Shown here: piece by piece, positions 16,921 through 54,205 of the stretch
Position numbering within the stretch: the first letter of the stretch is position 1
How the letters are laid out: every line of letters starts with the position of its first letter
Assembly: GCF_902459465.1 (NCBI RefSeq)
Contig: NC_047079.1
Span: 12,152,001 to 12,216,000 of the forward strand
From: Asterias rubens
Lineage: Eukaryota
Reading direction: 5' to 3'
Length of the DNA stretch: 64,000 nt
Notes under the pieces: model-generated
The model's input: the letters and a program-made list of their open reading frames with translations, nothing else
Databases searched by the model: none
What the model was told of the DNA's origin: nothing
Translations under genes and position numbers: made by a program

Positions 16921-16961
16921 AAGGAGAGTATCCTTATTCATACCCTTCTCCGATCATTACC

Positions 16962-18530: not shown

Positions 18531-19797
18531 TGTATTGAATCTGGTTCCTTGAAGTTGTTTGATGAAGAAGTTGGACGAGGATAGGGTTGGATGAAATAGC
18601 ATGAGCAGACAGACAGCTTGTAGGAATGTAAGAGTGATTGTATTCATGTACCTGACTGACAAGGTAACTTGGTTGTACTTGTTTATAAAGCATCGCACAC
18701 CAGTGAACTTCATCACGCACCGCTTAACTTCATCAATAATTTTGAGATTTGGGACGGGATGTTATTGAGTCATGTAGTCACCAAATCTAAAACTATTTCC
18801 ATTTATTGTGGCGACGATTGATACAGAATTTGCATAACAATAATCAGTGTTTACATTCTAAACGGTGATGTAATGAAAGAGTTAGGTTCGCGTAAATTAA
18901 GGATTTTTGCTACAAACCTAACAAAACTTGGCTGCAATTCCGCATGTTTAAGCGCTATTAAAAAAGTTACTGAAATTACCACCACAAAAATCTAATCGCA
19001 ATGTACTGTACCAACAAATATACAGTTTGTGTTAAATTTGTCCACTGTTTGTAATGTTTTAAGAACCCCCTAAGTTTTTACTAAACACGGGTTGGGTAAA
19101 GGTATTCATAAACATTTTGTAATTATTTTTCTTAAGTATTTTTTGTACCGAGTTAATTGGTTAAAAACACCCGACTTTGTGTAGAATACTATGATTTTAC
19201 CCATGAATTCGGAAGATTTGTCTTCACCGTTTGACCTCGTAAACTTGTTGCTAAATTATTTGTTTTCCGAATGATTTACAATAGATCAAAAGAATATTAT
19301 GAAACTAAATCACTGCACACAAATAATGTGTTTACTTTCAAAAATGGTTCTGGAAAGTAAACGGCCGACCGTGTTAGTTCGCGACGTAAAATTAAAAACC
19401 GTGCAATTTGGAGTGATACTTGTGTGGATCATTATATTCTACTTTTAAAACATCTTTCTAACCATATGCATTTCATAACAAACGGTTTCAAACGCTTTTC
19501 ATAGACCAACTCGTCCGATCCAAGGCAATGTGTTCTTTTAAATGCCATGCACAATGTACAGCGTACATACCATGCACAATTTGTTTGCTTGTTTGTATAA
19601 TGGTCGTAACTGACATACGTGAGATGATGACCACACAATAAAATCATCTTTTACATAAACTGATAAACCTGTAGAAAAGTTTGAGATCGATCGGCCATCT
19701 GGATGACGAGAAAGAAGTGAAAAAGCAAGAACACATTTTGCACGACATCGATTAAGTTTTTTTTTTTTTTAATAAAACGCTTACTGACTTTCCGTAT

Positions 19798-21168
19798 CTA
19801 CTTTAAACCTGGTTTGTAGTAGGTGTGTTTAATGCCAGTTGTTCCTGAGCTTGGTGCTGGGTCAACGTGCACAGTGACTTGGTGATTCCTTCTTTGCTGC
19901 TTGGGATCATGTGGCTGTGGTCGAAGGTAGCCATACTTAGGGCTGTCAGTCTCTACTTCAACCGGCTTGTAGTAGGTATCTTGTGTGGTAGTTGTTCGTG
20001 AGTCTGGTGTTGGGTCAACGTGCACAGCGACTTGGTGATTCCTTCTTTGCTCCTTGAGATGTGGCCGTGGTCGAAGGTAACCATCCTCTTGGCTTTCCTT
20101 CTCTGCTTCTTGTTTGGTAGTTGTAGCCGTAGTAGGTTCTGTGTATCCTGTGTTCTTGTCATCCGTTGGTTGCAGCGTCGTGTAGGGATCAGCTTTGGGC
20201 ATTTGAGATGTCTCGGTCTCTCTGATGACGCGTCTCATTTTGAAGATTTGAAATACACCAAGAATGATGATGATGGTGGATACACTGAGGGTAATTACAA
20301 ACGCTACAATCCATAGATTAAAAGAAGGGGTCTGGTTGGGTAGGGTTTGGGTTGGTGGGTGGGGCTGGTTGGGTTGGGTTGTCTCTGGTTCGATTGATGT
20401 TATTTCATTAGTCGCATCTGTCGAACTTGCTACACTGATTGGTCCAATGATACACGAACGTGTCATACTTGCACCACTCCCTTGTAATACAGAGCAGTTA
20501 AATGCAACACCATCGTCAGCAACAGTCACAGTCAAATTCAATGATAATGTATCCTTACCATCGACTCTTGAATATGTCCAGAGGTGGCTTCTGGGATCAG
20601 TCATTGGATGGGTTTCTATATCTGCAGGTTTACCAGTCTCAGACAGACATCTCAATTGTAGCTCTGTACCGGTGTCTACTGTGATAGGTCCAGAAGGGGA
20701 GCATATCGGGTACGATGGAGCTGACAGGAATACGCTGGATGTAGCTACAATTGTGTTCCCTCCTCCTCTGATAGGGTGGTTGACGTTACAAACATATTCA
20801 TCATAGTCGTCAATCTGCAGATAAGTAATCGTAAAGTCTTGAACAACCATCCCACTCTGTGGATAGGTTTTTTTGAACTTATACCGGTTAATGTTCGTTT
20901 GGTTAGAGTCTTTCCACCACAGAGTAGTATCGGGTTGAGTTGACCTCCACTCCACAATATGGTCCGACTCGAGGTTTGTAGCGTTACACATCATAACAAC
21001 TTGCCTGCCCATCCTACGATCGGCCTCTGGTGTTAAGATCACCGATGTCACCGACACCACTGGTTTGGGTGTTGCAATTGGTTGAGCAGTGACAGCCATC
21101 AGGAGTCCGCCTGCATCAAGTGAACACCAAACACACACCAGCAGCACTATAGACATCCTTCCATCCAT
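19798..21168 (-). CDS. Ig receptor A1: intronless SP-V-C2-TM receptor, 456 aa, Tyr-rich non-ITIM tail, probably C-terminally truncated
   Basis: Signal peptide MDGRMSIVLLVCVWCSL; V domain C..W..FTITYLQIDDYDEYVC; second Ig with 4 Cys; TM LWIVAFVITLSVSTIIIILGVFQIF; tail YTTL-x9-YTEP, 2x GYLRP and 2x TYYKP. Start set at the ATG shared by the paralogs (21168), not 21354. Confidence 0.88.
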   Translation of the reverse strand: MDGRMSIVLLVCVWCSLDAGGLLMAVTAQPIATPKPVVSVTSVILTPEADRRMGRQVVMMCNATNLESDHIVEWRSTQPDTTLWWKDSNQTNINRYKFKKTYPQSGMVVQDFTITYLQIDDYDEYVCNVNHPIRGGGNTIVATSSVFLSAPSYPICSPSGPITVDTGTELQLRCLSETGKPADIETHPMTDPRSHLWTYSRVDGKDTLSLNLTVTVADDGVAFNCSVLQGSGASMTRSCIIGPISVASSTDATNEITSIEPETTQPNQPHPPTQTLPNQTPSFNLWIVAFVITLSVSTIIIILGVFQIFKMRRVIRETETSQMPKADPYTTLQPTDDKNTGYTEPTTATTTKQEAEKESQEDGYLRPRPHLKEQRRNHQVAVHVDPTPDSRTTTTQDTYYKPVEVETDSPKYGYLRPQPHDPKQQRRNHQVTVHVDPAPSSGTTGIKHTYYKPGLK

Positions 21169-21403
21169 TGTATTGAATCTGGTTCCTTGAAGTTGTTTGA
21201 TGAAGAAGTTGGACGAGGATAGGGTTGGATGAAATAGCATGAGCAGACAGACAGCTTGTAGGAATGTAAGAGTGATTGTATTCATGTACCTGACTGACAA
21301 GGTAACTTGGTTGTACTTGTTTATAAAGCATCGCACACCAGTGAACTTCATCACGCACCGCTTAACTTCATCAATAATTTTGAGATTTGGGACGGGATGT
21401 TAT

Positions 21404-21446
21404 TGAGTCATGTAGTCACCAAATCTAAAACTATTTCCATTTATAG
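21404..21446 (-). promoter_or_regulatory. Candidate TATA (CTATAAAT) and AP-1 (TGACTCA) sites in the leader/promoter module upstream of A1
   Basis: TGAGTCA at 21404-21410 and ATTTATAG at 21439-21446. The AP-1 motif recurs intact in the homologous modules at ~18.77, 22.31 and 35.04 kb and is altered at ~30.03 and 33.72 kb. No transcript evidence. Confidence 0.3.
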
Positions 21447-22254
21447 TGGCGACGATTGATACAGAATTTGCATAACAATAATCAGTGTTTACATTCTAAA
21501 CGGTGATGTAATGAAAGAGTTAGGTTCGCGTAAATTAAGGATTTTTGCTACAAACCTAACAAAACTTGGCTGCAATTCCGCATGTTTAAGCGCTATTAAA
21601 AAAATTACTGAAATTACCACCACAAAAATCTAATCGCAATGTACTGTACCAACAAATATACAGTTTGTGTTAAATTTTTCCACTGTTTGTAATGTTTTAA
21701 GAGCCCCCTAAGTTTTTACTAAACACGGGTTGGGTAAAGGTATTCATAAACATTTTGTAATTATTTTTCTTAAGTATTTTTTGTACTGAGTTAATTGGTT
21801 AAAAACACCCGACTTTGTGTAGAATACTATGATTTTACCCATGAATTCGGAAGATTTGTCTTTACCGTTTGACCTCGTAAACTTGTTGCTAAATTATTTG
21901 TTTTCCGAATGATTTACAATAGATCAAAAGAATATTATGAAACTAAATCACTGCAAACAAATAATGTATTTACTTTCAAAAATGGTTCTTTGTTTCAGAT
22001 TCATTTGGATAAAGAAAACACATGTAAAAATATAACATTTTGGAAAACTAATGCAAAACACAAACATATAAATGACAGGATCAATAGGAAAATAAGTGGC
22101 TGCAACTCAATATAACTTCTTATCTAGCTACTATGGTTCAACAATTACAAAAAAGAAACAAAAGTTTTCATTTTGTTCTGCGTCATTTTACAATTTCTAA
22201 ACCGTATCCTGTTTGTTTGTCTGTTTGTTGAGATGGTTGTACAAGTTGCTTGTG

Positions 22255-22390
22255 CTCAGTATCACGCTCCAGTGAGCTTCTATTTTTGAGCTTTGGGATT
22301 TTATGTTTTGAGTCATGTTATTCAAAGAATCGTTATGTCCTATTGCCATAGTGGTGACGATTCAAATAGAATTTGCAGAATAATATTAAA
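22255..22390 (-). pseudogene. Diverged orphan copy of the receptor promoter/leader module
   Basis: atcacgctccagtgagcttc...ttgagtcatgt...tagtggtgacgatt...agaatttgca aligns by eye to the A1 upstream module. No coding sequence follows. Confidence 0.5.
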
Positions 22391-22422
22391 GTAGGATTTG
22401 AAACTTTGCATGGTGGAAATAC

Positions 22423-22637
22423 GATATGGAAAGGTTTGCGGTAACACCATGTAATGATTATCTCTAATAGAGTTGCGGTGGTTCTGAAAAAAACCGTTGG
22501 TTTCAACTCCTTTCTCCAGAAGACGATCAGAGCATACTGATCGAAACGTCGAGTTGAAACCAACCGTTCTTTTCAGAACCACCCCAACTCATTAGAGATA
22601 GTCATTACATGGTGTTACCGCAAACCTTTCCATATTG
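22423..22637. mobile_element. Foldback element with a hammerhead-like centre (half copy at ~55866-56005; related ends at 62385-62550)
   Basis: Arms atatggaaaggtttgcggtaacaccatgtaatga...ggtttcaactc / gagttgaaacc...catggtgttaccgcaaacctttccatat. Confidence 0.7.
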
Positions 22638-23230
22638 CATAATACTGTTCATCATTCAAACTGTTCTCAATACTATATATCTAGACAACAAGAACTGAAG
22701 CCACCACAGATTACTATTGTTTATTCCGATTGCTTCCATCAAAATAATTGCGCGATACAAAAACACATACAGACAATTCATGACGAACATCAATAATTTG
22801 TATTATTTTCACTCTAACGGGATCGGACAGCTGTGTTTATGGTGTCAACCGATGACTTCTTGTTATCCCATTGTTTGGACATATTTTTTTTTTAGACGTC
22901 CCCATTGGTTTGTACACGAAATCGAATCGAGGACGTCCTCCGCGGTGCGACTTTTTCCCGGATCCCATGTGTTATAGCCCTCTCCAAGTCCTCAGTCTGA
23001 ATGCGTGGACATGCCAAAAATACAAGGTAGAGATGGTTGTTCATTTTGGGTATTACCAATACACCGATGTGTGTTTCACTGTATACTCAGTACTAATACC
23101 CGAGTTGCGTTCTGTCAACAAAATCACATGCATATTACTCTGGTGGGATTCGAACCCACGACCTGCAATTCTAGAGCAGTGTTATATACTAACTAGACTA
23201 CCTATGCAAATTTAACATCCCATTAGATGG

Positions 23231-23819
23231 TTAAAGTCACCTGGAAGTGGTATTTTTTCAAATAAAGCTTTTGTCACTAATATATGTGTTTTGATGAGTG
23301 GAATGTGAATAAACAGTTAACTAAGGTTTTAAAAAATCAGTTCTTATGTTATTTACAAATTTAAGAGTAGACCCCGACCCGAGAGGGCGCTGTTCGCGAC
23401 GTCAATCGAGGCAGACTTTGCCTGTAATGCGTAGAGTAAACACAATTGCAAAGTACATGTACGGACCAAGTCGTGAGTTTGTACGTTTTAAAAACAGGTT
23501 TTTTTTTTTTTTTTTTTTTTTTTTCCGGCAATGCCGACCAGGTGTTTTGCTGCTGAATGCAGAAAAACACTTTTTGAAACGTACCAACTCACGACTTGGA
23601 CGTACATGTACTTTGCGCGTGTGTTTACTATACGCATTGCAGGCAAAAGGTGTAGGCGGAGTCAGCCCCCAAACAACTTTATATATTTTTTAAACATATT
23701 ATAAATCGTGACAAACAATTACTAAAAAAAATGTTTTATTGTTCGTAAGCATACTCTTATGTTTGAAAGAAAAAAAATTCTATTTCCAGGTGACTTTAAA
23801 GTTCAATATTACTCTTCCT
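23231..23819. mobile_element. TTAA MITE (aagtcacctggaa TIR)
   Basis: ttaaagtcacctggaa / ttccaggtgactttaa. Confidence 0.75.
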
Positions 23820-24108
23820 GAAACCAGTGATGTCGAATACCATTGAAGTATTTAACTCATTAATTGTAACAACTGATTACGCCTTGCACTCAATGGCTTT
23901 ACGTTTCAACCCAAGCAGAGTTAGATTCTGAAATGCTATTGATATATGTTTGTGTTTAATCTTTTACACAGAGAGTCAATCAAAATTTTAAATCTACAAA
24001 TTTGGCTCTTTCCTCAAAATCTACTTCTAACATTGAACTACTGTCGAAAATGAAGTTCTGTTTTATATCATAATGATTCATGGCACATGCTAAAAGGTTG
24101 TATCACCA

Positions 24109-24483
24109 GGAGCGTGTTTTGGCGACCATGACCAGAAACAAGTTTCTGACGTCAAATTCACTGACCGAAACAATTTCAGAGAGCTACGCGAAAACGGGTC
24201 GGTAACCAGAAACAGTTCATGACGTAGGTACATCTCTCAAAATATATAGCCGTCATTTTATTATCGACGACTGGAACTTAGTCTTTGTCATTTTATCAAC
24301 ATTGCTTCATAGTATTCCAGTACGTTTTCCGTTAGTTTTTAGAGTCCGCCATCTTAAAACCAAGCCTAAATCGACTTAACAAGTCGGTTACGGTTTGGTC
24401 GGAACAGCGGTTCAACCGAACACGCGGAAACGCTCGACCAATGACCAAACATGTTTCTGGTTAGGGTCGCCAAAACGCGCTCC
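24109..24483. mobile_element. MITE with ~32-bp TIRs
   Basis: ggagcgtgttttggcgaccatgaccagaaaca / tgtttctggttagggtcgccaaaacgcgctcc. Confidence 0.65.
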
Positions 24484-24934
24484 ATCCAGGGTTCTTCGTC
24501 CATGCTCATTATGACAAATGCTACAACGAGGGGGCGTTGTAAGAGGATCAGTGCTCTTATTTTAAGCCATTATACACTTTCGGTAAACAGTATTGTCCAA
24601 GTCCCACACTTCGTGTATCACAACTTATATATAAAACAACAAACCTGTGAAAAATTAGGCTCAATCGGTCTTTGGAGTCGGGAGAAAATAACGGGAAAAC
24701 CCACTCTTGTTTCCGCGCGTTTCGCCGTGTCATGACATGTGTTTAAAATAAATCCGTAATTCTCGCTAACGAGAATTTATATTGTTTTACCGTTTTCTCA
24801 AAAAGTAAAGCATTTCATGGACTAATATTTCAAGAGAAGTCTTTCACCATTACCTTCTGTAAACCCTGTAAATTATTTGTAAATCTGTGAATTTCTTTTT
24901 TTTTACCGAAAGGGTCCAATAAACAATAAAATGT

Positions 24935-26129
24935 CTAATTGTAAAGATTCTGATATGGTCTCTCAGCTGAACTCGGTGGCTGTCTGACCGCTTCATAGTC
25001 GGTGTTGGTGCTGCCCTCTGGCCGAGCGTAGTCATACTCATGGCTGTCTGTCTCTACTTCAACTGGTTGGTAGTAGGTATCTTGTGTGGTAGTTGTAGCC
25101 GTAGTAGGTTCCATATAGACTTTGTTCTTGTCCTCCGTTGGTTGCAGCTCCATGTAGGGATCAGCTTTGGGGACTTGAGATGCCTCTGTCTTTCGAAGAC
25201 TTTTTATGATATGTCTCATTTTGAAGATTTGAAATACACCAAGAATGATGATGATGGTGGATACACTGAGGGTAATTACAATCCATAGATTAAAAGAAGG
25301 GGTCTGGTTGGGTAGGGTTTGGGTTGGTGGGTGGGGCTGGTTGGGTTGGGTTGTCTCTGGTTTGATTGATGTTATTTCATTAGTCGCATCTGTCGAACTT
25401 GCTACACTGATTGGTCCAATGATACACGAACGTGTCATACTTGCACCACTCCCTTGTAATACAGAGCAGTTAAATGCAACACCATCGTCAGCAACAGTCA
25501 CAGTCAAATTCAATGATAATGTATCCTCACCATCGACACTTGATGATGTCCAGGGGTAGCTACTGTAATCAGTTATTGGGTTGGTTCTTGTTATATCTGC
25601 TGGGTTACCAGTCTCAGATAGACATCTCAAAGGTAGCTCTGTACCGGTGTCTACTGCGATAGCTCCAGAAGGGGAGCATTCTGGATACGGCTGAGGTGAT
25701 GATAGTATAACCTCAGATGTTCCTTCAACATCCACGTACTGTCTAAAGCGTGTTCGAAAAACCAAACAACAAAAGTTAGCATTATAGTCATCAGTCTGCA
25801 GATCGATAATCATTGGTTAAGTTTTGAACAACCATTCCTCTCTCTGGATAAAATGTGGTGTAGAAAAACCGTCTGTTGTACCTTAATGGGTGATCAATCC
25901 GTCTCACGTAACAGATGTCAAAAGTACTCCACTCCACGATGTGATCCGACTCTAGGTTTGTAGCGGTGCACCTAATAATAATCTGCCCACCCAATTTACG
26001 ATCAGCCTCTGGTGTTAAGATCTCAGCAGACACTGTTGGTTGAGCAGTGACAACCATCAGGAGTCCACCTGAATCAAGGGAACACCAAACACACACCAGC
26101 AACACATACATAGACATTCTTCCATCCAT
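24935..26129 (-). pseudogene. Ig receptor A2: frameshifted SP-V-C2-TM gene with a complete class-A tail
   Basis: ORFs 25791-26306 and 24935-25813 join through a +4 nt shift near 25811-25814 (QNLT|IIDLQTDDY versus paralog QDFTITYLQIDDY). Tail has YMEL-x9-YMEP, TYYQP, YDYARP, TDYEAV, PYQNLYN. Confidence 0.85.
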
Positions 26130-26613
26130 TGAATCTGAGTCCTTGAAGTTGCTTGATAAGATAATGAGTGATGATGATAATGAGTGATGAAATAGCATGA
26201 GCAGACACTCAGCTTGTAGGAATATTATAAGTGGTTTATTGTACATGCAATTGAATGACAAATTAAATTGGATGTACTTCCGTGTACTATTATTTTCATC
26301 ACACACCCGTGAACTTCCTCAAAGGGCTCATAATATCACAGGAAAAAGCAACGAGTTTACGTCACTTTGCTTTTCAGAATCGCATTTTTGGCAATTGACG
26401 ATATTTTGTTTAGCATTATAAATAAATGAAGCTTTCTTCAGGATAAAAAAGAAGAAGTTGTGACTGGAAATATTTATGGACAATGTGCATGGCATTTCTT
26501 CACAGCCCCTATCCCCAGTGACATTGATGTTGCAGTCAGTCTTTTGATGAAAGTATTAATAAACATGTTGTTTACAACTTGATTGTGATGAGGGAAGATG
26601 GAACCAGAGTTAG

Positions 26614-26750
26614 GCCGTGTCCGAATTAGCGGCTACAGCTCTGGCTACGGCTAGATTTCCGTGTCACCACGCACTGAGGTATAGGGCGCCCTTAGCAACA
26701 CCTTTAGCAACAGCCGTAGCCGTAGCCATAGCCGCCAGTTCGGATTCGGC
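26614..26750. mobile_element. PIF/Harbinger-like MITE
   Basis: tta|ggccgtgtccgaattagcggcta ... tagccgccagttcggattcggcc|tta. Confidence 0.55.
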
Positions 26751-26846
26751 CTTAGAGCTTGCAGTTCAACATGGTTTAGACATGGAGGAAGAAAGTCTCC
26801 CTCCATGGTTTAGATGGACACAACTACTTTGTTGTTCATGTAAATA

Positions 26847-27200
26847 GGCGTGACGTGGCCGAGCAGATAAAAACACCGCACCCATGCTCAGTGTGTTTCT
26901 GTTCAGCAGTGTGTGGGTTCGAGTCCCGGTCGTGACACTTCGGACGGGACGTAAATCAGTTGGTCCCGTATGTTGTGTAACGCAGTTAAAGAACCCATTG
27001 TATCGAAAAGAGCAGGGGTTCGCCCCGGTGTTCGTGGTTTGATTGTCTGCATTTTTTCAATGTACCTTGTAAACAGTTCATGGTGCTATGTAAACGAATA
27101 TGCCGCATACTTAAAAAAAAACAGTAGCTCCACATTTTTAACTTGAAAAAACATATTTGAATGTTGAGGCGCCTTGAGCGTCACTGACGGATATGGAAGC
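26847..27200 (+). mobile_element. tRNA-derived SINE
   Basis: Pol III A-box tggccgagcag (~26856) and B-box ggttcgagtcc (~26916), followed by a body shared with reverse-strand copies at 35.3-35.9 and 62.6-62.8 kb. Confidence 0.65.
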
Positions 27201-27590
27201 TTAATGGCAGTGGACACTGTTGGTAATTACTCAAAATAATTATGAGCAAAAAGCCTTTCTTGGTAACGAGTAATGGGGAGAGGTTGATAGTATGGTGAAA
27301 TCATTGTGAGAAACGGCTCACTCTGAAGTGACGTAGTTTTCAAGAAAGAAGTAATTTTCCACGAATTTGATTTGTGGACCTCAGAATTAGTTTTTGAGGT
27401 CTCGAAATCAAGCATCTGAAAGCACACAACTTCGTGTGACAAGGGTATTTTTTTCTTTCATAATTATCTAGCAACCTCGACGACCAATTGAGTTCAAATT
27501 TTCACAGGTTGGTTTTTTATGCATATGTTGAGATACACCAAGTGAGAAGACTGGTCTTTGACAATTACCAATAGTGTCCATTGTCTTTAA
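27201..27590. mobile_element. MITE family 1
   Basis: ttaatggcagtggacact ... agtgtccattgtctttaa. Confidence 0.8.
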
Positions 27591-28279
27591 GAAGAAACAA
27601 CTATTATTATTGTCCGTCTGATGTTCGCATTATACTTCGGAAAACACTACGACATTCAGTGTTATCACATGAAAATACATATTGAGAAACCAAACTCATT
27701 TTGGATACACTCACCAAAGGTTTTATTCTGTGAAAACTCGTTGTCAATTTTTGTTTGTCAACTATACACCATTGAACTTAAAAGGTTTTGTAGGACAAAG
27801 AACACAATGTCCACAGATTTACACTAAACTTACACAGTTTGAAGACAATGATAGTAGAAAGCTTCCCTGAAAATATTACGTGCTGAGGTGCTGTAGTTTT
27901 TGGGAAATGAGTAAAACAATGTCATGAAAATAATGTTCGTCTCATTTACAAACGTATTTTCATGACATTGTTTTACTCATTTCTCAAAAACTCCAGCACC
28001 TCAGTAAGAAATACTTGAAGAGAAGCTTTCCACTATCATTATCTTCAAACCCTGTAAGTTTAATGTAAATCTATGGACATTATGAAAAGGTACCCAAATC
28101 CTTTAAGTTGAACCAGTCAGTTTCCATTGTGATTTATTATTTTGATGTAACTCATTGTGGTATACCAATAACATACAAGAGTCACCTATTAATGATTCAA
28201 ACTAAATTCGTAAAGGCCATAAATACTTATTATTATCCTGAGTAAACAAAAACTATAAATTAAATCAAGGCTTGAATAC

Positions 28280-28640
28280 ATGTTTGCGATGGATCGGTCA
28301 AGTTGGTCCATGAAAAGCGTTTGAAACCGTCTGTAATAAAGTGCATAATATGGTTAGAAAGATGTTTTAAAAGTAGAATATAATGATCCACACAAACATG
28401 CCTCGGAATGGAATGGTTTTCCTTATAAGCCGTTAGCTAACACGGTCGGCCATTTTGTGGAGTCAAGTTTGTAAACTCCATAAAATGGCCGACCGTGTTA
28501 GTTCGCAAAGTAAAAGGAAAACCACGCAATTTTGAGGCATGTTTGTGTGGATCGTTACATTCTTCTTTTTAAAACATATTTCTAACATGCATTGTATAAC
28601 AAACGGTTTCAAGGACCAACTGGACCAATCAAAGGCCCTC
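28280..28640. mobile_element. Palindromic MITE family 2
   Basis: Arms around tttgtggagtcaagtttgtaaactccataaaa. Confidence 0.7.
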
Positions 28641-29535
28641 TAATTAAACTGCAAAACCCCATTTATTATTTCTGTACATTCCAATATAATATTATAGAAA
28701 AATTGCTTAAATTCTCTGTCCTGTTTATGAGTATAGTTCTTAGTTTCGGTAAATTCACAAATAAACTAGCAATGAGTTTGATTATATAATACGAATAAAG
28801 ACTGCATTATGCGATATATACAAACGGTTATGTTAACAAGATCCAAATCTGCGTATAGGTATTGTTTATAGTTTACAAATTTACTAGATTCATTGAAAGA
28901 AGTCTAAATTCATGAATGATCAATGAAGATTCATACCAACACCAAAGAGTCTGTGGTTAAATTGGAACCGCTAAGCTTTTAAAATGCAAGAAAATTGCCA
29001 CGGTATTCGAACAAATGATTTAAAAAAAGAATTTTTTGTTGTTGTATAGTTATATGAACTATGTTATTGTTTAACTTATGGTTATTTATGTTTGTTTTGT
29101 AACATCTTTTTTTGTTTGGCAGCACTTGAATTACAAGAATTCTTAATATTAGTGAATATTATGCAAATAAATAGAATTCTAGTCGAAATTTTAGTAAATT
29201 CTTCACTGTTCCCTCGAACCCGCGGCTGTATAAGCGCTGGAAATCGACTAACGCTGTGAACGATCAAGGTAATTTACATCGGTTAACAAAACTCACCTTA
29301 CCCGCCGCGTTGTGCAGCCATGGTACATGCGTTTTTGTTCCACATCACGTGATTGGTTCTCGACCAATCAAACTTTCTAATTTGTTACCGAGGTATAACA
29401 ATGTTTTATGGAGGATTTGATCAAATCTCCTGAAGTTCATTGAAATTCTTTCTAATATAGATTGCAACTAGTGACAACTGCAACTGATTTTGTCCCTGAT
29501 TTCAATCCATTTAGACTGAATTTCAGTCTAAAACT

Positions 29536-29813
29536 TTAAAGACACTGGACACTTATGGTAATTTTCAAAGACCAGTGTTCTCACTCTTACATAAAATAAC
29601 AAACTTGTGAACATTTGAACTCAATTGGTCGTCGAAGTTTCGAGATAATGAAAGAAAAAAACACCCTTGTCACATAAAGTTTTGTGCTTTCAGATACTTG
29701 ATTTTGAGACCTCAAAAATCTAATTCTGAGGTCTCGAAATCAAATTCGTGGAAAATTACTTCTTTCTCAATATTACTTCAGAGGAAGTAGTTTCTCACAA
29801 TGTTTTATACTAT
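29536..29813. mobile_element. MITE family 1, truncated, abutting the orphan ATG
   Basis: ttaaagacactggacac start, opposite orientation, truncated at tatactatc. Confidence 0.75.
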
Positions 29814-29814
29814 C

Positions 29815-30190
29815 CATGGTTTTGAATCCGATTCCTTGAAGTTATTTGATGGGGAAAGTTGGATGAGGACAAAATGGATGAAATAGCATGAGCAGACAGA
29901 CAGCTCGTATAAGAGTGTTTTAATGTACATGTACTTGACTGGTACCTGTTAACATACAGCACACTCCAGTGAACTTCATCACGCACCGCTGAAGTTCATC
30001 AATAATGTTGAGCTTTTGGATCGGGTGTTATTGAGTCCAGTTCTATTTATAGTCAAATCCAGAACTGTTGCCATTTTAATATAGTGGCGACGATTTACAT
30101 AGAAACTTAACAATAATGTTCAGTGTTAACGTTCTAAGCAGTGATATAATAAAAGAGTTGGGTTTGCGTACAGAGGATTTATGCTACATC
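29815..30190 (-). pseudogene. Orphan receptor leader/promoter ending at ATG-GAT; coding region replaced by a TTAA-family MITE
   Basis: The - strand reads GGAATCGGATTCAAAACCATGGATAG versus paralog GGAACCAGATTCAATACAATGGATGG. The upstream module continues to ~30.9 kb, interrupted by a MITE at 30196-30575. Confidence 0.75.
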
Positions 30191-30195
30191 ATACT

Positions 30196-30575
30196 TTAAA
30201 GACAGTGGACACTCTTGGTAATTGTCAAAGACCAGTCTGCTCACTTTGTATACTCAACATATGCATCAAATAACAAACCTGTGAAACTTTAAGCTCAACT
30301 GGTCGTCGTAGTCGCGAGATAACTATGAAAGAAAAAAACACGAAGTTGTGTGCTTTCAGATGCTTTGATTTATAGACCTCAAAATCTTATTCTGTGGTCT
30401 CGAAATCAAATTCGTGGAAAATTACTTCTTTCTCGAAAACTGCGGCACTTCAGAGGGAGCCGTTTCTCACAATGTTTTATACTATCAACCTCTCCCCATT
30501 ACTCGTTACCAAGTTAGGTTTCATGCTAATAATTATTTTGAGCAATTACCAATATATAGTGTCCACAGCCTTTAA
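30196..30575. mobile_element. MITE family 1 inserted in the orphan promoter module
   Basis: Both TIRs with TTAA. The flanks rejoin to the A1-like sequence gctac...aaacttggctgcaattcc. Confidence 0.8.
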
Positions 30576-31848
30576 CCAAACTTGGCTGCAATTCCGCATG
30601 TTTTCTAGGCGTCATTCGCACATTCACTTCAGAAAGTGCAACTATACAAAACTTTAATCGCGGTGTATTGTCCACTCACATAGACAAAAAAAAAACAGTT
30701 TAGTACAATTTGTCCACTATTTGTTTTGTTTAAAGAACTCTCACAGTTTTTACAGAAGGTATTTACTCGAAATTGACTATACCAATTTCAGAAGGGTGTT
30801 CTTTACCGTTTGACTCGTAAACTGTCGGCTAAATTACTTGTTTTCTGAATGAATTACAAATAGATAAAAAGAGTGAACCCAGGCAGAATAATTCTGAAAC
30901 GCTATTGATGTTTAATATTTTGTGTGTGATCTTTTTCTCAGTGACCCAGTTCCACCAGAATGTTTCTTGTTTTATTTATTTATTTTTTCATATTTATATT
31001 TATATTCATATTCATAGACACAATGATTACAAGTTGGACAGTGGCTGTCAAGGATTATTATACAAACGTTTAAAAACTGTCATCTTGAGATGTATAAAAC
31101 CAGACCCCGGCAAACGATAATTATATAATATAAAAAGGAGATTGCACTCCCCAACGCTTTTAAAATCACACATTATAAAACATTAAAACAGAGCAAATCC
31201 AGATTAGTGCAAATACAACACCCACAAAACACCATAAAACAGGAGGAAGGGACAACAATTCAAAAACCCAGAGCCAAAAACGCGAATGGGCTGAAAACCC
31301 TCTAAAGCAAACATACAACTGGTACCAAAGAACATCTTTCAAATCAATGAAGCAGGCGCTAAAATAAATGAGCTAAACATACAATTAAAAACCAACACTA
31401 ACATACAAAAAGTTCCACCCCGGCTGTGATTTTTTTTTTCTAAACGCCATTGCAATGATTTGGTGAAAGAGCAGGCCATTTCATGATGACGTAATCTGAC
31501 GGAAAGAGCCAATCACAGCGGCAGGGAAAAAAATATTGCAATGTCGTTTGGGGGAAAAAAATCGCATCCGGGCTACATTCGAAAGGACTTGTAACCCCCC
31601 ATAAAATAACCAAATTAAAACTGGTACATCAAAAATATTTCAAAACCATGAAGCAGGAACTTACAATTAATTTAGTAAACATACAATTAAAAACCAGCGG
31701 CACAAACCTACAAAAATAATACTAAAAGTTCCTAGCTCGGCTACATTTTGAAAGGACAAAATTTACAAACCCCAATGTCCTCAAACTCCGTAAGATGTTA
31801 GTGGGCCAAAAAAATCCAACAACTTTGCAGTAGCTGATCCCGTTCAAG

Positions 31849-32280
31849 CAGGCGCCCCAGAGTCGCGCCGAACCAAACAGATTAGGAGCGACCCTAGTCG
31901 ACCCAAAATTTGGTTTTAGACTAGACTTGTGGACAAGTCGTTAATGGTCCCACGCGATGAGATAGTCGAGTTGTGGCGGTGCTCTCGCGAGATCACTGCT
32001 CTGCATCAGCAGTTCGCGCGAGAGCAGTGATCTCGCGAGCGCACCGCCACAACTCGACTATCTCATCGCGTGGGTCCATTTACGACTTGTCCACAAGTCT
32101 AGTTTTCGACATTTACATTAGGTTCGGCTTATGACAAGATTTACGTCTGGAAGTCTGTCTGGAGTCGTTCCGAACGACTGCATCGGTCGATCTTTCGACT
32201 TCAAGCGTCCAGTCGCTCCTAACTGTTTCAGATGTCTAACGTATGCAATACATTGGTTCGGCGCGACGCTGGAACGCCTG
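31849..32280. mobile_element. MITE with a nested 184-bp near-perfect palindrome (31920-32103)
   Basis: Outer caggcgccccagagtcgcgccgaaccaa / ttggttcggcgcgacgctggaacgcctg; inner actagacttgtggacaagtcg...cgacttgtccacaagtctagt. Confidence 0.75.
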
Positions 32281-32426
32281 TCAAAAACGGGTGTTCTTCT
32301 CTAATTGTAAATATTCTGGTATCGTCGCTCAGAATGTTGTGGCTGTGTGAGTACCACTTCATAGCCGGTGCTAGTGTCTCCCTCTTGGCGTTCGTTCTCT
32401 AAATCAACTGGTTGGTTGAAGGTGTG

Positions 32427-33497
32427 TTAAATAGTAGTTGCTTCTGGGTTTGGTGTTGGGTCAACGTGCACAGTGACTTGATGATTCCTTCTTTGCTCAT
32501 TGGGATCATGTGGCCGTGGTCGAAGGTAGCCATCTTGGCTCACGTTCTCTACTTCTTGTATGGTAGTTGTAGCCGTAGTAGGTTCCGTGTATCCTCTGTT
32601 CTTGTGATCCGTTGGTTGCAGCTTCGCGTAGGGATCAGCTTTGGGGACTTGAGATGCCTCAGTCTTTCCAAGACTATTTATGAGACGTGTCTTTTTGAAG
32701 ATTTGAAATGCACCAAGAATGATGGCGATGGTGGATACACTGAGGGTAACTACAAAAGCTACAAGCCATGGGATGTGGTTGGGTGGGTTCGGGGTCTCTG
32801 GTTGGATTTGGATTGGTCCAAAGATACACGAACGTGTCATTGTACCACTCCCTTGTAAAACAGAGCAGTTAAATGCAACACCATCATCAGCAACAGTTAC
32901 ATTCAAATTCAATGATAATGTATACTTACCATCGACACTTGATGACGTCCAGTTGTAGTTACTGGGATCAGTCATTGGATAGGGTTCTATATCTGCAGGG
33001 TTATCCGCCTCAGATATACATCTCAATTGTAGCTCTGTACCAATGTAGACTGGTTTAAGTCCGGAAGGGGAGCACACAGGATACGATGGAGCTGACAGGT
33101 TTACGCTGGATGTAGCTACAATTGTGCTCCCTCCTTTACTGAGAGGGTGGTGGACGTTACAAACATATTCATCATAGTCGTCAATCTGCAGATGATTAAT
33201 CGTAAAGGTTTGAACAATCTTCCCACTCTCTGGAGAACTTTTAGTGACCATAAACCGTATGCTGGAAATGTCCTTTATTGGTTTGTTGTCCCGCCTCCAT
33301 TCAATAAAGGAATCCGGCTGGAGGTTTGTAGCGTTACAATTCATCACCAACTTCCCACCCACGTTACGGTCAGCTTCTGGTGTTAAGATCTCAGCATACA
33401 CTTTTGGTTCAGCAGTGGCAACCATCAGGAGTCCGCCTGCATCAAGTGAACACCAAACACACACCAGCAACACATACATAGACATTCTTCCATCCAT
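32427..33497 (-). CDS. Ig receptor A3: intronless SP-V-C2-TM receptor, 356 aa, with a premature TAA (ancestral stop at 32301)
   Basis: Same domain layout; tail YAKL-x9-YTEP and GYLRP. 41 more in-frame codons (HTFNQPVDLENERQEGDTSTGYEVVLTQPQHSERRYQNIYN) follow the TAA and match the A2 terminus. Confidence 0.85.
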   Translation of the reverse strand: MDGRMSMYVLLVCVWCSLDAGGLLMVATAEPKVYAEILTPEADRNVGGKLVMNCNATNLQPDSFIEWRRDNKPIKDISSIRFMVTKSSPESGKIVQTFTINHLQIDDYDEYVCNVHHPLSKGGSTIVATSSVNLSAPSYPVCSPSGLKPVYIGTELQLRCISEADNPADIEPYPMTDPSNYNWTSSSVDGKYTLSLNLNVTVADDGVAFNCSVLQGSGTMTRSCIFGPIQIQPETPNPPNHIPWLVAFVVTLSVSTIAIILGAFQIFKKTRLINSLGKTEASQVPKADPYAKLQPTDHKNRGYTEPTTATTTIQEVENVSQDGYLRPRPHDPNEQRRNHQVTVHVDPTPNPEATTI

Positions 33498-34076: not shown

Positions 34077-34412
34077 TTAAAGACACTGGACACCTTTGGT
34101 AATTGTCAAAGACAGCAGCATTTTCACTTGGTGTATCTCAACATATGCCTATAATACCAAACCTGTGAAACTTTCGAGCTCAATATTGGCCGTCGAAGAT
34201 GCGAGAGAATAATGGAAGAAAAACGCCCTTACGTCGCATAAGTTGTGTGCTTTCAGATGCTTGATTTCGAGACCCCAGCTGAGGTCTCGAATTCAATTCA
34301 AATATTTTGGTGAGAAATTAGCTAATTCTCATAAACTACTTTACTTCAGAGGGAGCTGTTTCTCACAATGTTTTATACTATCAACAGCTCTCCATTACTT
34401 GTTACCAATTAA
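34077..34412. mobile_element. MITE family 1
   Basis: ttaaagacactggacac start and family body, fused to a family-2 palindrome. Confidence 0.7.
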
Positions 34413-34778
34413 GGAACACGTTGCCTTGGATCGGTCGAGTTGGTCTTTGAAAAGCGTTATAACCGTTTGTTTTAAAATGCATATGGGTAGAAAGATGTTG
34501 GAAAAGTAGAATACAATGATCCACACAAACATGCCTCGAAATTGCACGGTTTTCCTTTTACCTCGTCGACTAACACGGTCGGCCATTTATGGGAGTCAAA
34601 TTTTTGACTCCCATAAATGGCCGACCGTGTTAGATTGCACAGTTAAAAGAAAACCACGCAATTTCGAGGCAAATTTGTGTGGATCATTGTATTCTACTTT
34701 TAAAACATCTTTCCAACCATATGCATTTAATAAAAAACGGTTACAAACCTTTTTTATAGACCAACTCGCGTCCGATCC
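34410..34778. mobile_element. Palindromic MITE family 2, running into the assembly gap
   Basis: ttaaggaacacgttgccttggatcgg ... ccaactcgcgtccgatcc then N. Confidence 0.8.
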
Positions 34779-39364: not shown

Positions 39365-41167
39365 TTAACTTTGCAAGAACTGTTTTCTCATAACACTTGC
39401 GTACGTCACTGCATCAGAAGACGAAGGAGAAGCGAGTCCGCCGTCTTGAATCTCATCTGATTGCAAATCCAAATCAGCGTAGACAAGGTGGTCTGGGTTG
39501 TCATGGGTACCCTGCTGCCTCATGGGACGAGAGACCTGGGTATCAGTAGGATCACTGGGTGCTGGGTGGGCTTCCTCCTTGGTAGAGAGACCGGCATCTG
39601 GGTGCATTGGGATTGACACTGGGTGTATTTGGGATGGAACTGTCTGGTTGTCACTGTGAGTTAGGGGATTGCTACGCTGTGCTGATTTAGGCTGATAGGG
39701 TTTAGGCTTGGGGGGTTTTGACCGTGAGGATGGAATTGGTTTGACAGTTGCCGTCGGTTTGGGGGATGTGAGTAACCCGTCACGAGAGGGCCTTGTTGTT
39801 ACATCAGAGACATTAGAAACAGCGTATCGCTGACCGTTATCAGTGGTAGTAGGTTTAAATGATTGGTCTGGTTGCTGCCTCATCGACTCATGAGCAGGGG
39901 GGTGAGCTTGGTATGGTTTAGCGTATATTAGACTTGGATCAGTCGCCTGTGCTCTTTGTGCCGGCATTGTGCCGGACGCGTCAACGTCGCGGTGCTGAGT
40001 GCTTAAATACATGGTATTGTTCTGTAATCCTTCTTGTAACGTACCAAGACCTCCGCATTCATTAAGACTGATCTGAGAATCGTCAAGTCTATTAAGAGTT
40101 TGTTCAGTGTTTGTTTGGTTGTATGACTGTACCGGTTTGGGATCTGAGAATGCGAGGCGACGTTTACGGCAAGTGATGATCAGGATAATGGTGAGAAGAA
40201 GAGCTACGACTGCAGCGGAGACTATACCAGCGATGACTGCACGGCTGAATGGTGACGACGATGGTAACCTAGTGGTTTCGTTGAACGGAGTAAACGGTGT
40301 TTCAGATGGCTGTAAAGACGTAGTGTTGGTGATTGGTGTTGGGTTTCTCATCTCGGTTGATGTCATTGAAGACATAGACGGCATACATGTGGGAGTGGGT
40401 ACCGCTGTTGGCTGAGTTATTGTGATTGGTCCAATGGTACAAGAACGTGCCATATTGGGGAAAAACTGCGCTGATGTAATGGTGCATGTGAATACAATAC
40501 AATTATCAGCTACGCCTGCTATCGAACTAGATGTCCTGATGAGTGTATCGGTGTCAACAGTGATTTGTGATGTCCATGAAGTGAAGCTAGACGTATAAAT
40601 CGAAGTTGTGACTGCTGCTATGACTGCCGGATGACCGCTCTCAGATGTACATCTCATATTCAACACTGTTCCTTCGTTTACTGTAATGGGTCCATCTGGA
40701 GAGCATATAGGGAAGGATGCATTGGGGAAGTAAAACACTGAAAGTGTAACACTGGATGAGGCTATAACGTTGTACGCTCCATCTGGTGTGGGGGAAACGA
40801 CTTTGCAGCCATACCGATTGGAATCTTCCCTTTGGACATTGATGATGGTAAAGTCTTGAACTGTCCTCCCAGTTGTCATATCTTCCTGTGTACTAAACGT
40901 GAATCGTGACTCCGCGGTTACAGTTACATCCCCCAATCTCAAGACACGGTCTGGGTTTGTTGCGCTCCATGAAACTATGTAATCCGACTGGAGGTTCATA
41001 GCGGTGCACCTCAAATCAACCTGCCCGCCCTCCTTACGATCAGCATATTGTGTTAAGAACACCGCAGATACTGTTGTTCGAGCAGTGACAACCATCAGGA
41101 GTCCGCCTGCATCAAGTGAACACCAAACACACACCAGCAACACATACATAGACATCCTTCCATCCAT
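39365..41167 (-). CDS. Ig receptor B1: intronless SP-V-C2-TM inhibitory-type receptor, 600 aa, two ITIMs
   Basis: V domain ..FTIINVQREDSNRYGC; TM AVIAGIVSAAVVALLLTIILIITC; Pro/Ser/Thr-rich tail with LVYADL and VTYASV. Confidence 0.92.
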   Translation of the reverse strand: MDGRMSMYVLLVCVWCSLDAGGLLMVVTARTTVSAVFLTQYADRKEGGQVDLRCTAMNLQSDYIVSWSATNPDRVLRLGDVTVTAESRFTFSTQEDMTTGRTVQDFTIINVQREDSNRYGCKVVSPTPDGAYNVIASSSVTLSVFYFPNASFPICSPDGPITVNEGTVLNMRCTSESGHPAVIAAVTTSIYTSSFTSWTSQITVDTDTLIRTSSSIAGVADNCIVFTCTITSAQFFPNMARSCTIGPITITQPTAVPTPTCMPSMSSMTSTEMRNPTPITNTTSLQPSETPFTPFNETTRLPSSSPFSRAVIAGIVSAAVVALLLTIILIITCRKRRLAFSDPKPVQSYNQTNTEQTLNRLDDSQISLNECGGLGTLQEGLQNNTMYLSTQHRDVDASGTMPAQRAQATDPSLIYAKPYQAHPPAHESMRQQPDQSFKPTTTDNGQRYAVSNVSDVTTRPSRDGLLTSPKPTATVKPIPSSRSKPPKPKPYQPKSAQRSNPLTHSDNQTVPSQIHPVSIPMHPDAGLSTKEEAHPAPSDPTDTQVSRPMRQQGTHDNPDHLVYADLDLQSDEIQDGGLASPSSSDAVTYASVMRKQFLQS

Positions 41168-43679: not shown

Positions 43680-45092
43680 TCAACTTTGCAAGAACTGTTT
43701 TCTCATAACACTTGCGTACGTCACTGCATCAGAAGACGAAGGAGAAGGGAGTCCGCCATCTTGAATCTCATCTGATTGCAAATCCAAATCAGCGTAGACA
43801 AGGTGGTCTGGGTTGCCATGGGTACTCTGCTGCCCCATGGGACGAGAGACCTGGGTATAAGTAGGATCACTGGGTGCTTGGTGGGCTTCCTCCTGGGTAG
43901 AGAGACCGGCATCTGGGTGCGTTGGGATTGACACTGGGTGTGTTTGGGATGGAGCCATCTGGTTGTCACTGTGAGTTATGGGGTTGTTACGCTGTGCTGA
44001 TTTAGCCTGATAGGGTCTATTAAGAGTTTGTTCAGTGTTTGTTTGGTTGATGGACTGTACCGGTTTGGGATTTGAGGTTGCGAGGCGACGTCTACGGCAA
44101 GTTACGATCAGGATAATGGTGAGAAGAAGAGATACGACTGCAGCGGAGACTATACCAGCAATGACTGCAGGGCTGAATGAAGATGATACTAAATTAGAGG
44201 TATCGTTGAACGGAGTGATTGGTGTTGGGTAGCCCATCTCGTGGGGTGGCATTGAAGACGCAGTCAAACATAGTGTTCTAGTGGGAGTGGAGTCTGATGC
44301 GGAGGGGGTTATTGTTATTGGTCCAATGGTACAAGATCGTTCCATATTGGGGAAATTGACTGAAGTAATGGTGCATGTGAATGCAATACAATTATCAACT
44401 ACAACAGCTGTCAAACTAGAAGTCCTGATGAGTGTATCGGTGTCATTAAGAACTTGTGATGTCCATGGAGTGTATCTAGCAGTATAAAACGAGTGAGTGA
44501 CTACTGCTGTGACTGCCCGATGACTGCTCTCAGATGTACACTTCATATTCAACACTGTCCCTTCGTCTACTGTTATGGGCCCAGCTGGGAAGCAGATAGG
44601 GAAGGATGCATTGGGGAAGTAGAACACTGAAAGTGTAACACTGACTGAGGCTACAACGTCTTGCGCTGCTCCTCTTAGTGCGCTCCTCTCGGAACTGACT
44701 GTGCAGAAGTAATCATTAGAATCTTCCCTCTGCACATTGATGATGGTAAAGTCTTGAACAGTCATCCCAGTTATCGTATATTCCGTCGTGTTAAATAAGA
44801 ATCGTGGCCCTAAAGGGGGAACAGTTTCATTTCCAAATCTCAGGACCATCTTTGGACCTTCAGTGGTCCACGAAACAATGTGATTTGGCTGTAGGTTTGT
44901 AGCGGTACACCTTATGTCAACCTGCCCACCCTCCTTACGATCAGCCTCTGGTGTTAAGATCACCGCAGACACTTTCGGATCTGTTGTGGGTGTTACAACT
45001 GGTTGAGCAGTGACAACCATCAGGAGTCCGCCTGCATCAAGTGAACACCAAACACACAACAGCAACACATACATAGACATCCTTCCATCCAT
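43680..45092 (-). CDS. Ig receptor B2: inhibitory-type, 470 aa, short tail, two ITIMs
   Basis: Paralog of B1 with an in-frame ~129-aa tail deletion (LNR|PYQ). PTYTQV, LVYADL and VTYASV are retained. Confidence 0.92.
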   Translation of the reverse strand: MDGRMSMYVLLLCVWCSLDAGGLLMVVTAQPVVTPTTDPKVSAVILTPEADRKEGGQVDIRCTATNLQPNHIVSWTTEGPKMVLRFGNETVPPLGPRFLFNTTEYTITGMTVQDFTIINVQREDSNDYFCTVSSERSALRGAAQDVVASVSVTLSVFYFPNASFPICFPAGPITVDEGTVLNMKCTSESSHRAVTAVVTHSFYTARYTPWTSQVLNDTDTLIRTSSLTAVVVDNCIAFTCTITSVNFPNMERSCTIGPITITPSASDSTPTRTLCLTASSMPPHEMGYPTPITPFNDTSNLVSSSFSPAVIAGIVSAAVVSLLLTIILIVTCRRRRLATSNPKPVQSINQTNTEQTLNRPYQAKSAQRNNPITHSDNQMAPSQTHPVSIPTHPDAGLSTQEEAHQAPSDPTYTQVSRPMGQQSTHGNPDHLVYADLDLQSDEIQDGGLPSPSSSDAVTYASVMRKQFLQS

Positions 45093-49493: not shown

Positions 49494-49810
49494 CCTTCCA
49501 TCAATTGTATTGAATCTGATTCCTTGAAGTTGTTTGATAAGAAGTTGGATGAGGATAGGGTTGGATGAAATAGCATGAGCAGACACACAGCTTGTAGGAA
49601 AGTATTGAGTAATATTGAATGTGCATGCACTTAAATACCAAGTTTTATATGTATGTACTTCCGTGTAATAAGCATCACACACCAGTGAACTTTGTCAATG
49701 ATATGAACTTTTAGAGTTATGTTTTTCAATGAGGGTCATAATTTCACAGGTAACTTGAACCCGGATTGTACTGCCACACGTAGTAGTGACGATTTACATA
49801 TAATTTACCT

Positions 49811-54187: not shown

Positions 54188-54205
54188 TTATAACCGTGTT
54201 GATGT

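Follow-up and report, generated by a model that had tools for sequence, protein, structure and literature searches.

Paired activating and inhibitory receptors of the immunoglobulin (Ig) type, such as KIR, LILR, SIRP and the Siglecs, are central to vertebrate innate immunity. Comparable paired systems have been described only recently in a cnidarian and a tunicate. The Alr genes of Hydractinia (PMC9546547) and the FcoR/fester genes of Botryllus (PMC12582321) form lineage-specific clusters of the Ig superfamily (IgSF) with many pseudogenes, and their members are split between those carrying an immunoreceptor tyrosine-based inhibitory motif (ITIM) and those carrying an ITAM (immunoreceptor tyrosine-based activation motif), a hemITAM or another tyrosine "core" motif (PMC9546547; PMC12582321). 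Here we analyze a stretch of 64,000 nt from the sea star Asterias rubens (C19:12152001-12216000 in a genome of 417.6 Mb), hereafter called the window, whose minus strand carries a row of receptor genes, each consisting of a single open reading frame. Three tandem single-exon genes in 19798-33497, A1, A2 and A3, all on the minus strand, have a tyrosine-rich tail that we call class A, and four longer minus-strand genes, B1-B4, extending from 39365 to 55837, have an ITIM tail. In the literature nothing was found on the annotated loci or on such a receptor family in sea stars; a family of this genomic design in sea stars would carry the paired-receptor principle over to echinoderms.

The best explanation for A1-A3 is that they belong to a sea-star family of Ig-type surface receptors built like the vertebrate paired receptors, that A2 is most likely an intact canonical gene, and that A1 and A3 represent a divergent sub-type, A', without the distal TxYEAV/YQN unit of the tail. 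Taken as a whole, we consider this account probable. What is new here is the class-A cassette, a compact candidate signalling module, and its pairing with ITIM genes. The three genes are as follows.

A1, 19798..21165, minus strand: open reading frame with a Pfam Ig match, two Ig folds in the structural model and an A'-type tail
A2, 24935..26129, minus strand: gene with a canonical 77-residue class-A tail in which Y1-Y6 are all present
A3, 32427..33497, minus strand: frame of 356 codons with two Ig domains (Pfam) and an A'-type tail

In each gene a signal peptide is followed by an Ig domain that Pfam detects and by another domain; a Ser/Thr/Pro stalk leads to the single membrane span, behind which lies the tail. 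The Pfam matches (Ig_3, ig and I-set) fall on the first domain. An AlphaFold model of the A1 outer part, made with 22 relatives, shows two beta-sandwich domains (residues 38-146 and 154-246) at predicted local distance difference test values of 80-94, and the Ig cysteines are invariant across these relatives. With Ig folds containing a Cys...Trp...Cys core, a signal peptide and a single span, the products have the features of two-domain type I membrane receptors of the IgSF. A Foldseek search with the A1 model retrieved Dpr, Rst, nectin-2 and antibody fragments (E ~1e-8), i.e., generic two-Ig modules only, and gave no specific nearest family. The closest proteins to the window genes in a protein search are uncharacterised and come from Asterias amurensis and A. 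rubens only. The membrane spans (20242-20313 in A1, 32697-32768 in A3) are uncharged; as an earlier note on this DNA had stated, D, E, K and R are absent from the spans of all three genes. Because the class-A span is uncharged, there is no sign of an adaptor of the DAP12 or FcR-gamma type.

All tail motifs listed in the earlier note were found again at their positions. The A2 tail contains DPYMEL (25145-25162), x9, YMEP, TYYQPV, TDYEAV (24986-25003) and YQNL (24944-24955). In A1, DPYTTL (20173-20190), x9 and YTEP (20134-20148) are followed by two copies of GYLRP and by TYYKPV, and the tail of A3 reads DPYAKL (32619-32636), x9, YTEP and GYLRP before it is closed by TAA (32427-32429). Further conserved tyrosines, which had not been listed, lie in TYYQPV (itself a TxYxxV match), in YDYARP and in the GYLRP of A1 and A3. 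The canonical class-A tail comprises 77-79 residues and is near-invariant, reading KADPYMELQPTEDKN.VYMEP, a Thr-rich linker, TYYQPVEVE, EYDYARP, TxYEAV, x10, YQN and 2-3 final residues. The cassette thereby presents eight tyrosines in ~77 residues (PYMEL, x9, YMEP, TYYQPV, YDYARP, TxYEAV, x10, YQN); some class-A genes have in addition 1-6 inserted copies of a ~45-residue module repeating TYYQP/DYA.P. Pfam searches with class-A tails gave noise-level matches only.

A tail of this kind occurs in 21 of 1.84 billion protein cluster representatives, which include sequences from A. amurensis, from the draft assembly GCA_014845345.1 and from Patiria miniata (GCA_015706575.1). The Patiria tail reads QADPYMELQPTDD...VYTEP, DDYERP and TDYEVT and has no YQN, and the T at position -2 of the TxYxx[VI] site is not retained in Patiria-type tails such as DKYEAV. 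The proximal PYMEL-x9-Y.EP unit is thus the oldest part of the tail, since the Patiria version retains it but not YQN. The cassette is conserved within Asterias and its proximal half in Patiria. Where the synonymous rate (dS) is large enough, the ratio of nonsynonymous to synonymous rates (dN/dS) of canonical tails is mostly 0.1-0.6. Between subfamilies dS is saturated in the outer parts (>1), versus 0.05-0.5 in the tails; because of this low tail dS and low dN/dS, the tail is both constrained and homogenised between paralogues. Judged from these rates, the class-A cassette is under purifying selection and is kept alike by recombination or gene conversion. A more distantly related tail, YMEL-x9-YMGL or YMEL-x9-YTGL with the end YENI, was noticed in Tara Oceans contigs (ERZ908283; P0052 and P0053). 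It is probably of echinoderm origin and would satisfy a broad ITAM definition, and its similarity to the A2 tail is weak (E ~3e-4).

The second tail class was found in four genes of the window and in a gene immediately to its right.

B1, 39365..41167, minus strand: ITIM paralogue whose long tail has LVYADL and VTYASV at its end, at a tyrosine spacing of 26 residues
B2, 43680..45092, minus strand: ITIM paralogue with a shorter tail, both ITIMs as in B1
B3, 47733..49505, minus strand: ITIM paralogue whose usual start reads ATT
B4, 54206..55837, minus strand: more distant ITIM paralogue with IVYADL and VVYATV
Right-flank ITIM gene, C19:12216765-12218276, plus strand: intact, 503 codons, just to the right of the window

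All five genes have ITIM cassettes that finish with [LI]VYADL and V.YA[ST]V, and the two tyrosines are spaced 26-27 residues, within the 20-30 residues typical of paired copies of the ITIM, [I/L/V/S]xYxx[I/V/L]. The pair LVYADL/VTYASV, ~26 residues apart, is much like the ITIM pair of KIR. The right-flank gene, which corresponds to P0009 and P0015 of A. amurensis, has an outer part of the class-A kind. The statement in the earlier note that all ITIM genes are intact stands for the four window frames, which are open, but needs a qualification for B3, which has ATT at 49503-49505 where all other family members have ATG (ATG GAT GGA AG.). The next in-frame ATG of B3 follows four codons downstream, still ahead of the hydrophobic signal sequence.

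When the A2 tail was searched against the whole genome, 46 matches resulted, and the catalogue built from them holds ~33 class-A genes, at least 12 of them complete, and 10 ITIM genes; these numbers are lower bounds, as several loci were covered without their full flanks and the ITIM gene at C13:15101213 without its 5' side. Both classes are clustered together on C19 (in three places), C13 and C1. The class-A tail is attached to at least four kinds of outer part, namely "MDGRMS" (window and C13), two kinds starting "MGRG..." or "MDFTSW..." (C19, 11.78-12.03 Mb) and one-Ig forms. Conversely, similar outer parts carry different tails. On C13, the outer parts of a class-A gene (15108266) and an ITIM gene (15128855) are 92.7% identical over 247 residues; their nucleotide identity is 80-100% for ~900 nt and drops to background exactly ahead of the membrane span. 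A class-A gene on C6 and B3 are 78.6% identical in their outer parts, as close as B1 is to B3, and A1 is 68% identical to the right-flank ITIM gene versus only 64% to A3. The arrangement recurs in P. miniata, where 12 kb of GCA_015706575.1 (JADOBP010000028.1:8336173-8348180) hold an ITIM gene between two class-A genes; the Ig2 domains of these tandem genes are 82-84% identical. In one public gene model of that locus, P0050, the ITIM tail of one gene is merged with the gene that follows it. With outer parts 68-93% identical across the classes, joint clusters and the same pattern in P. miniata, the proposal of a paired family in which class A forms the alternative arm is supported. Among the features that define such families, similar outer parts with different tails in the same clusters were found, and a charged membrane residue with an ITAM adaptor in the non-ITIM partner was not. 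As read from these sequences, the paired-receptor architecture of the family is well supported.

The starfish family resembles KIR, LILR, SIRP, the CD33-related Siglecs and teleost NITR/NILT in being a clustered multigene family with near-identical outer parts and alternative tails, and it also shares with the vertebrate paired families fast evolution, birth and death of genes and exchange of segments. However, apart from the Ig fold the sequences are unrelated, and the non-ITIM arm of the starfish receptors lacks a charged residue in its span and has its own eight-tyrosine tail. The starfish genes also differ in having a single exon, and for this reason their tails are swapped by recombination or conversion rather than by exon shuffling. 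With Alr and FcoR/fester the starfish family has in common that it is a lineage-specific, clustered IgSF family with many pseudogenes, whose members divide into carriers of ITIMs and of other tyrosine motifs, and that the genome encodes Syk, SHP, Grb2 and the like, but the phylum is a different one, the sequences are unrelated and the non-ITIM motifs of the starfish do not conform to the ITAM definition used for those systems. The SLAM/CD2 family, whose tails contain several TxYxxV/I switch motifs, likewise has two Ig domains and one span, and TxYxx[VI] sites occur in 55 of 61 class-A tails; again no homology is detectable, and the most conserved part of the starfish tail, PYMEL-x9-YMEP, is not an immunoreceptor tyrosine-based switch motif (ITSM).

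Motifs were counted in 61 distinct class-A tails, and chance rates were taken from shuffles of the A2 tail. ITSM-type TxYxx[VI] sites, which the earlier note had proposed, appear in 6.6% of the shuffles, and there are two of them per canonical tail: A2 has TYYQPV and TDYEAV, A1 has TYYKPV, and A3 has only TGYEVV behind its stop codon. The Y1-x9-Y2 unit is present in 54 of the 61 tails. The Grb2-type YxN site also agrees with the earlier description, with YQN or YKN near the C-terminus in 36 tails and YxN anywhere in 37 (39% of shuffles, weak when taken alone); it is present in A2, lost in A1 and located behind the stop in A3. YxxP occurs in 59 tails (63% of shuffles). Given these chance rates, single matches are weak, and weight comes from conservation, namely that of TxYxx[VI] (55 of 61), of the Y1-x9-Y2 unit (54 of 61) and of the terminal YxN (36 of 61). 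ITIMs were found in three of the 61 tails. The label "hemITAM/ITAM-like" has to be given up. With the definitions quoted in PMC9546547, neither the ITAM (Yxx[I/L]-x6-9-Yxx[L/I], or x6-12 in a broad form) nor the tri-acidic hemITAM of the Dectin-1/CLEC-2 type ([DE][DE][DE]xYxxL) occurs in any of the 61 tails: Y1-Y2 is YxxL-x9-YxxP, whose second half does not fit an ITAM, Y5-Y6 is YEAV-x10-YQN[IL] and resembles an ITAM only if V is allowed (32 of 61), and the context of the first tyrosine, K-A-D-P-Y, offers a single acidic residue.

Based on this set of sites, a signalling route for class A can be outlined. A fast-evolving outer part (signal peptide, two Ig domains and stalk) is joined to one of two interchangeable cassettes of span and tail. 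Upon ligand binding, kinases of the Src type would phosphorylate the class-A tail, which might then recruit SH2 proteins via its ITSM-type, Grb2-type and YxxP sites, and the resulting output would differ from, and probably oppose, that of the ITIM partner. Syk, Grb2, Src-family kinases, Csk, Abl and PLC-gamma have been reported for P. miniata (PMC11593052). A more far-reaching version takes the family as an old paired system common to Forcipulatida and Valvatida, with two cassettes moved by conversion and the eight-tyrosine module providing an activating signal without adaptor; we regard this version as possible but would give it somewhat less than even odds. If true, it would imply a balance of "go" and "stop" receptors in an echinoderm similar to that of natural killer (NK) cells, possibly serving recognition of self and non-self or of pathogens. 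We know of no link between sea stars and allorecognition.

Alternatively, the class-A tail might be a second regulatory or inhibitory "switch", its ITSM sites recruiting phosphatases of the SHP-2 or SHIP type, or an endocytic or sorting tail, in which case the paired receptors would differ in trafficking or strength and not in the sign of their signal. The presence of two TxYxx[VI] sites per canonical tail together with the absence of an ITAM fits this idea, and YMEL, YEAV and YQNI/L double as matches to YxxPhi, the AP-2 signal. ITSMs of PD-1, PECAM-1 and the SLAM receptors are able to bind phosphatases. However, an ITIM cassette is already attached to near-identical outer parts, which would make a second inhibitory one redundant over the age of the sea stars, and ~70 contiguous conserved residues are far more than a sorting signal needs. 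We therefore consider a switch or sorting tail unlikely and prefer to view class A as an arm of a paired family with an output of its own.

The earlier note had described every class-A gene of the window as damaged, A1 ending early, A2 being frameshifted and A3 carrying a nonsense codon. For A2 this probably does not apply. In the assembly the gene consists of two frames, 25791-26129 and 24935-25813, and the break can be located by comparison with P0004, its counterpart in A. amurensis, which reads LTITDLQTDDY... at this site.

A2 frameshift site, 25808..25817, minus strand: 10 nt where 6 are expected from A. amurensis P0004, a surplus of 4 nt

Any deletion of 4 nt within 25808-25817 restores one open frame of 396 codons, reading ...LTIIDLQTDDYNANFCC... 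at this site. Logan contigs of four sequencing runs (X1, X3, X5 and X14) were aligned to 20400-26399; the runs represent genomic DNA, since all four also cover intergenic sequence. Over the A2 site, the X1 contig has 523 letters in a 527-nt span with one mismatch, the X3 contig 483 letters in a 487-nt span without mismatch, and the X14 contig, which resembles another species, is net 4 nt short over 470 nt with 30 mismatches. The interval shared by the contigs that are shorter than the assembly is 25536-25958. Because contigs from three out of the four DNA read sets fall short of the assembly by net 4 nt, with no other difference in one of them, the frameshift is very likely an assembly error or a private allele. 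The only other places in the shared interval that are prone to a 4-nt slip, GGTTGGTT at 25579 and (CT)4 at 25838, were rejected, as the assembly already agrees with the A. amurensis protein at both and the frame would be disrupted by removing nucleotides. A protein search for read-derived fragments spanning the break, using the A2 piece that adjoins it, gave zero matches. NCBI's model of A2, P0006 (LOC117302220), gets across the break by excising 139 nt with GT-AG borders (25743-25881) and thereby loses the second cysteine of Ig1; in a family that otherwise has no introns, this intron is probably an annotation work-around for the assembly error. The sample X5, whose organism label differs, shows further changes: in its contig 25498-26025 they cluster at 25858/25860 beside an A5 run, and a 9-nt insertion lies within 25222-25390, in the membrane-span region of A2. 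In this sample A2 may have a different, real 1-nt lesion, or the contig may be in error.

The truncation of A1, by contrast with the A2 frameshift, is real, because its nearest protein in A. amurensis, P0001 (76% identical), retains the end, extending ~35 residues further through TDYEAV and YQN, and because an independent contig stops at the same place. This contig, P0047, comes from an unrelated ENA assembly (844 nt) and has the same tail and end as A1 with one substitution. The lesions are thus not sequencing errors throughout, the possibility that the earlier note had raised against itself: this objection probably holds for A2, whose surplus is missing from independent read sets, and fails for A1, whose end is confirmed. 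The stop codon of A1 is TAG (19798-19800), and the distal TxYEAV/YQN unit is missing. Directly after TYYKP the homology to other class-A tails breaks off, and three new codons, the stop, an A-run and a dispersed repeat, called X here, follow.

A1 tail internal tandem duplication, 19788..20109, minus strand: 19788-19959 versus 19943-20109, 80% identical in self-BLAST
Copy of dispersed repeat X, 19358..19716, no strand assigned: found by self-BLAST, adjoining the A1 stop

In translation the tandem duplication repeats the module GYLRP...HQVTVHVDP...TYYKP. The copy of X at 19358-19716 matches 18122-18478 at 98.3% identity, and ~8 further places in the window are related to it. Since homology stops just before X, the distal tail was lost at this place, probably through a rearrangement adjoining the repeat. 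A second, "hollow" A1 locus lies at 18122-19351, where the repeat is joined straight to the A1 5' flank and the gene body is missing. This hollow copy comprises the 5' flank plus the opening 17 codons of the signal peptide and matches the A1 locus (cf. 21117-21989) at 99.1% identity over 873 nt. The read-contig depth of the duplicated flank is ~2x single copy in X1 (293 versus 155-169) and ~1.7x in X5, so that the duplication seems to be real rather than an assembly haplotig.

In A3, the distal unit would have been lost through a change of CAA to TAA, as the closing TAA aligns with CAA (Gln) in A1. Behind the stop the frame continues.

A3 post-stop in-frame remainder, 32301..32426, minus strand: contains TGYEVV (32352-32369) and YQNI (32310-32321)

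The remainder runs to a second stop (32301-32303); in place of the Y3 pair it reads TFN, and it has lost the Y4 unit. No closer counterpart of A3 than 60-62% identity was found in A. amurensis by protein search. The tails of A1 and A3 have a common pattern, Y.TL or Y.KL and YTEP followed by QE.E...GYLRPRPH...HQVTVHVDP, and a degraded gene at C19:11810392 has this A' sub-type as well, as does the A. amurensis protein P0001.

The two genes might be working short-tail variants, with altered output or acting as decoys, that have shed the distal unit only. Both are open through the signal peptide, two Ig domains, the span and 70-130 tail residues, and the proximal PYxxL-x9-YxEP that they retain is the portion whose conservation reaches Patiria. 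Genes that are otherwise open have repeatedly shed the distal unit (those on C3, C10, C17 and C13; A. amurensis P0003, P0004 and P0005), and the A1 end is identical in a second sample. Yet the dN/dS of 0.88 between the A1 and A3 tails is near neutral, A3 lacks Y3 and Y4 even behind its stop, and the NCBI protein set holds no product for A1 or A3. We regard such working variants as a rather unlikely explanation, and retain the description of A1 and A3 as a divergent sub-type without the distal unit.

Several observations weigh against this overall account of the three genes. Firstly, for A2, the X5 contig is net 5 nt short over the 528-nt span of the site, with three mismatches, and the position of the 4-nt gap in the read contigs is strongly inferred, not directly viewed. 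Secondly, the evidence for the TAA of A3 is at the level of the assembly, and no sequence source carrying A3 is on record as RNA. Thirdly, the tails of A1 and A3 have a dN/dS of 0.5-0.9, higher than that of canonical tails, a value compatible with decay or relaxed constraint as well as with a functional shift. Fourthly, ~70 contiguous residues of the canonical tail are conserved and the tyrosines are not singled out among them; as the whole tail is conserved, its conservation does not point specifically to docking by phosphotyrosine. Finally, the sign of the signal is at issue: ITSMs can recruit phosphatases as well as activating adaptors, and that class A activates is something we only infer, by analogy.

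A different explanation, which follows the earlier note, is that class A is the activating arm with a hemITAM- or ITAM-like signal and decays faster than the ITIM class, as do the activating members of KIR, Ly49 and Siglec-14/16, so that A1, A2 and A3 are three local pseudogenes. In the window as assembled, three of three class-A genes are damaged versus none of four ITIM genes (Fisher p = 0.029). If A2 is counted as intact and the flanking ITIM gene is added, the ratio becomes 2/3 versus 0/5 (p = 0.11). If a frameshift, an internal stop or a fragment is counted as a strict lesion, ~12/33 class-A and 2/10 ITIM genes of the whole genome are affected (p = 0.46); with calls resting on a frameshift alone excluded, because the case of A2 shows them to be unreliable, 7/33 and 1/10 remain (p = 0.66). 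The two damaged ITIM genes are the following.

C13:15133825-15135744: in-frame stop in Ig1, first ITIM tyrosine replaced (IVFADL)
C13:15101213-15103088: frameshift in Ig1, at the level of the assembly

Only when any departure from the canonical tail end is counted do the classes differ (21/33 class-A versus 2/10 ITIM, p = 0.028), and frequent loss of the distal tail end is a peculiarity of class A. Some of these ends are, however, shared between species: the same ...AERP stop occurs in A. rubens on C3 and in A. amurensis P0005 and P0003. The split of the two species has been estimated at ~28 Mya (PMC11090083). Because the same end is present in both, such short ends look like kept variants and not like fresh damage. 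The best pairs between A. rubens and A. amurensis are 75-87% identical for class A and 77-79% for the single ITIM gene compared, which suggests that the whole receptor family evolves fast. As to the dN/dS and pseudogenisation rates per class that the earlier note had proposed to compute, canonical class-A tails have a dN/dS of mostly 0.1-0.6, and the strict lesion rates of the two classes do not differ significantly. What speaks for faster decay is the count in the assembled window, the non-canonical ends, the higher dN/dS of the A1 and A3 tails and the lack of a close A. amurensis counterpart of A3. Against it stand the absence of ITAM and hemITAM from all tails, the A2 lesion missing from independent read sets, the insignificant difference in strict lesions, at least 12 complete class-A genes, the short ends kept in both Asterias species and the age of the cassette, which is common to Patiria. 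A faster turnover of class A is not upheld by these numbers, and we judge the three-pseudogene explanation improbable. Of the damage reported for the class-A genes of the window, the truncation of A1 and, at assembly level, the TAA of A3 stand, and the frameshift of A2 probably falls to an assembly error or private allele. Pseudogene counts in such clusters consequently need checks at read level, as one of three lesions is probably an assembly error, masked by a false intron in the NCBI model.

Between the genes, the intergenic spacers (22200-24900 and, for example, 27199-27590, 30196-30578, 34077-34413, 37449-37834 and 52784-53166) are packed with high-copy dispersed repeats, whose read-contig depth is thousands-fold over single copy. 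One ~390-nt repeat family has more than 10 copies in the window, in both orientations. An Rfam scan of the 64-kb window gave zero matches. At 16001-18000, GC content is raised to 0.44 with a GC skew of -0.21, and the ORF at 16421-16798 is a proline-rich, low-complexity frame with PDPPPPPNP repeats.

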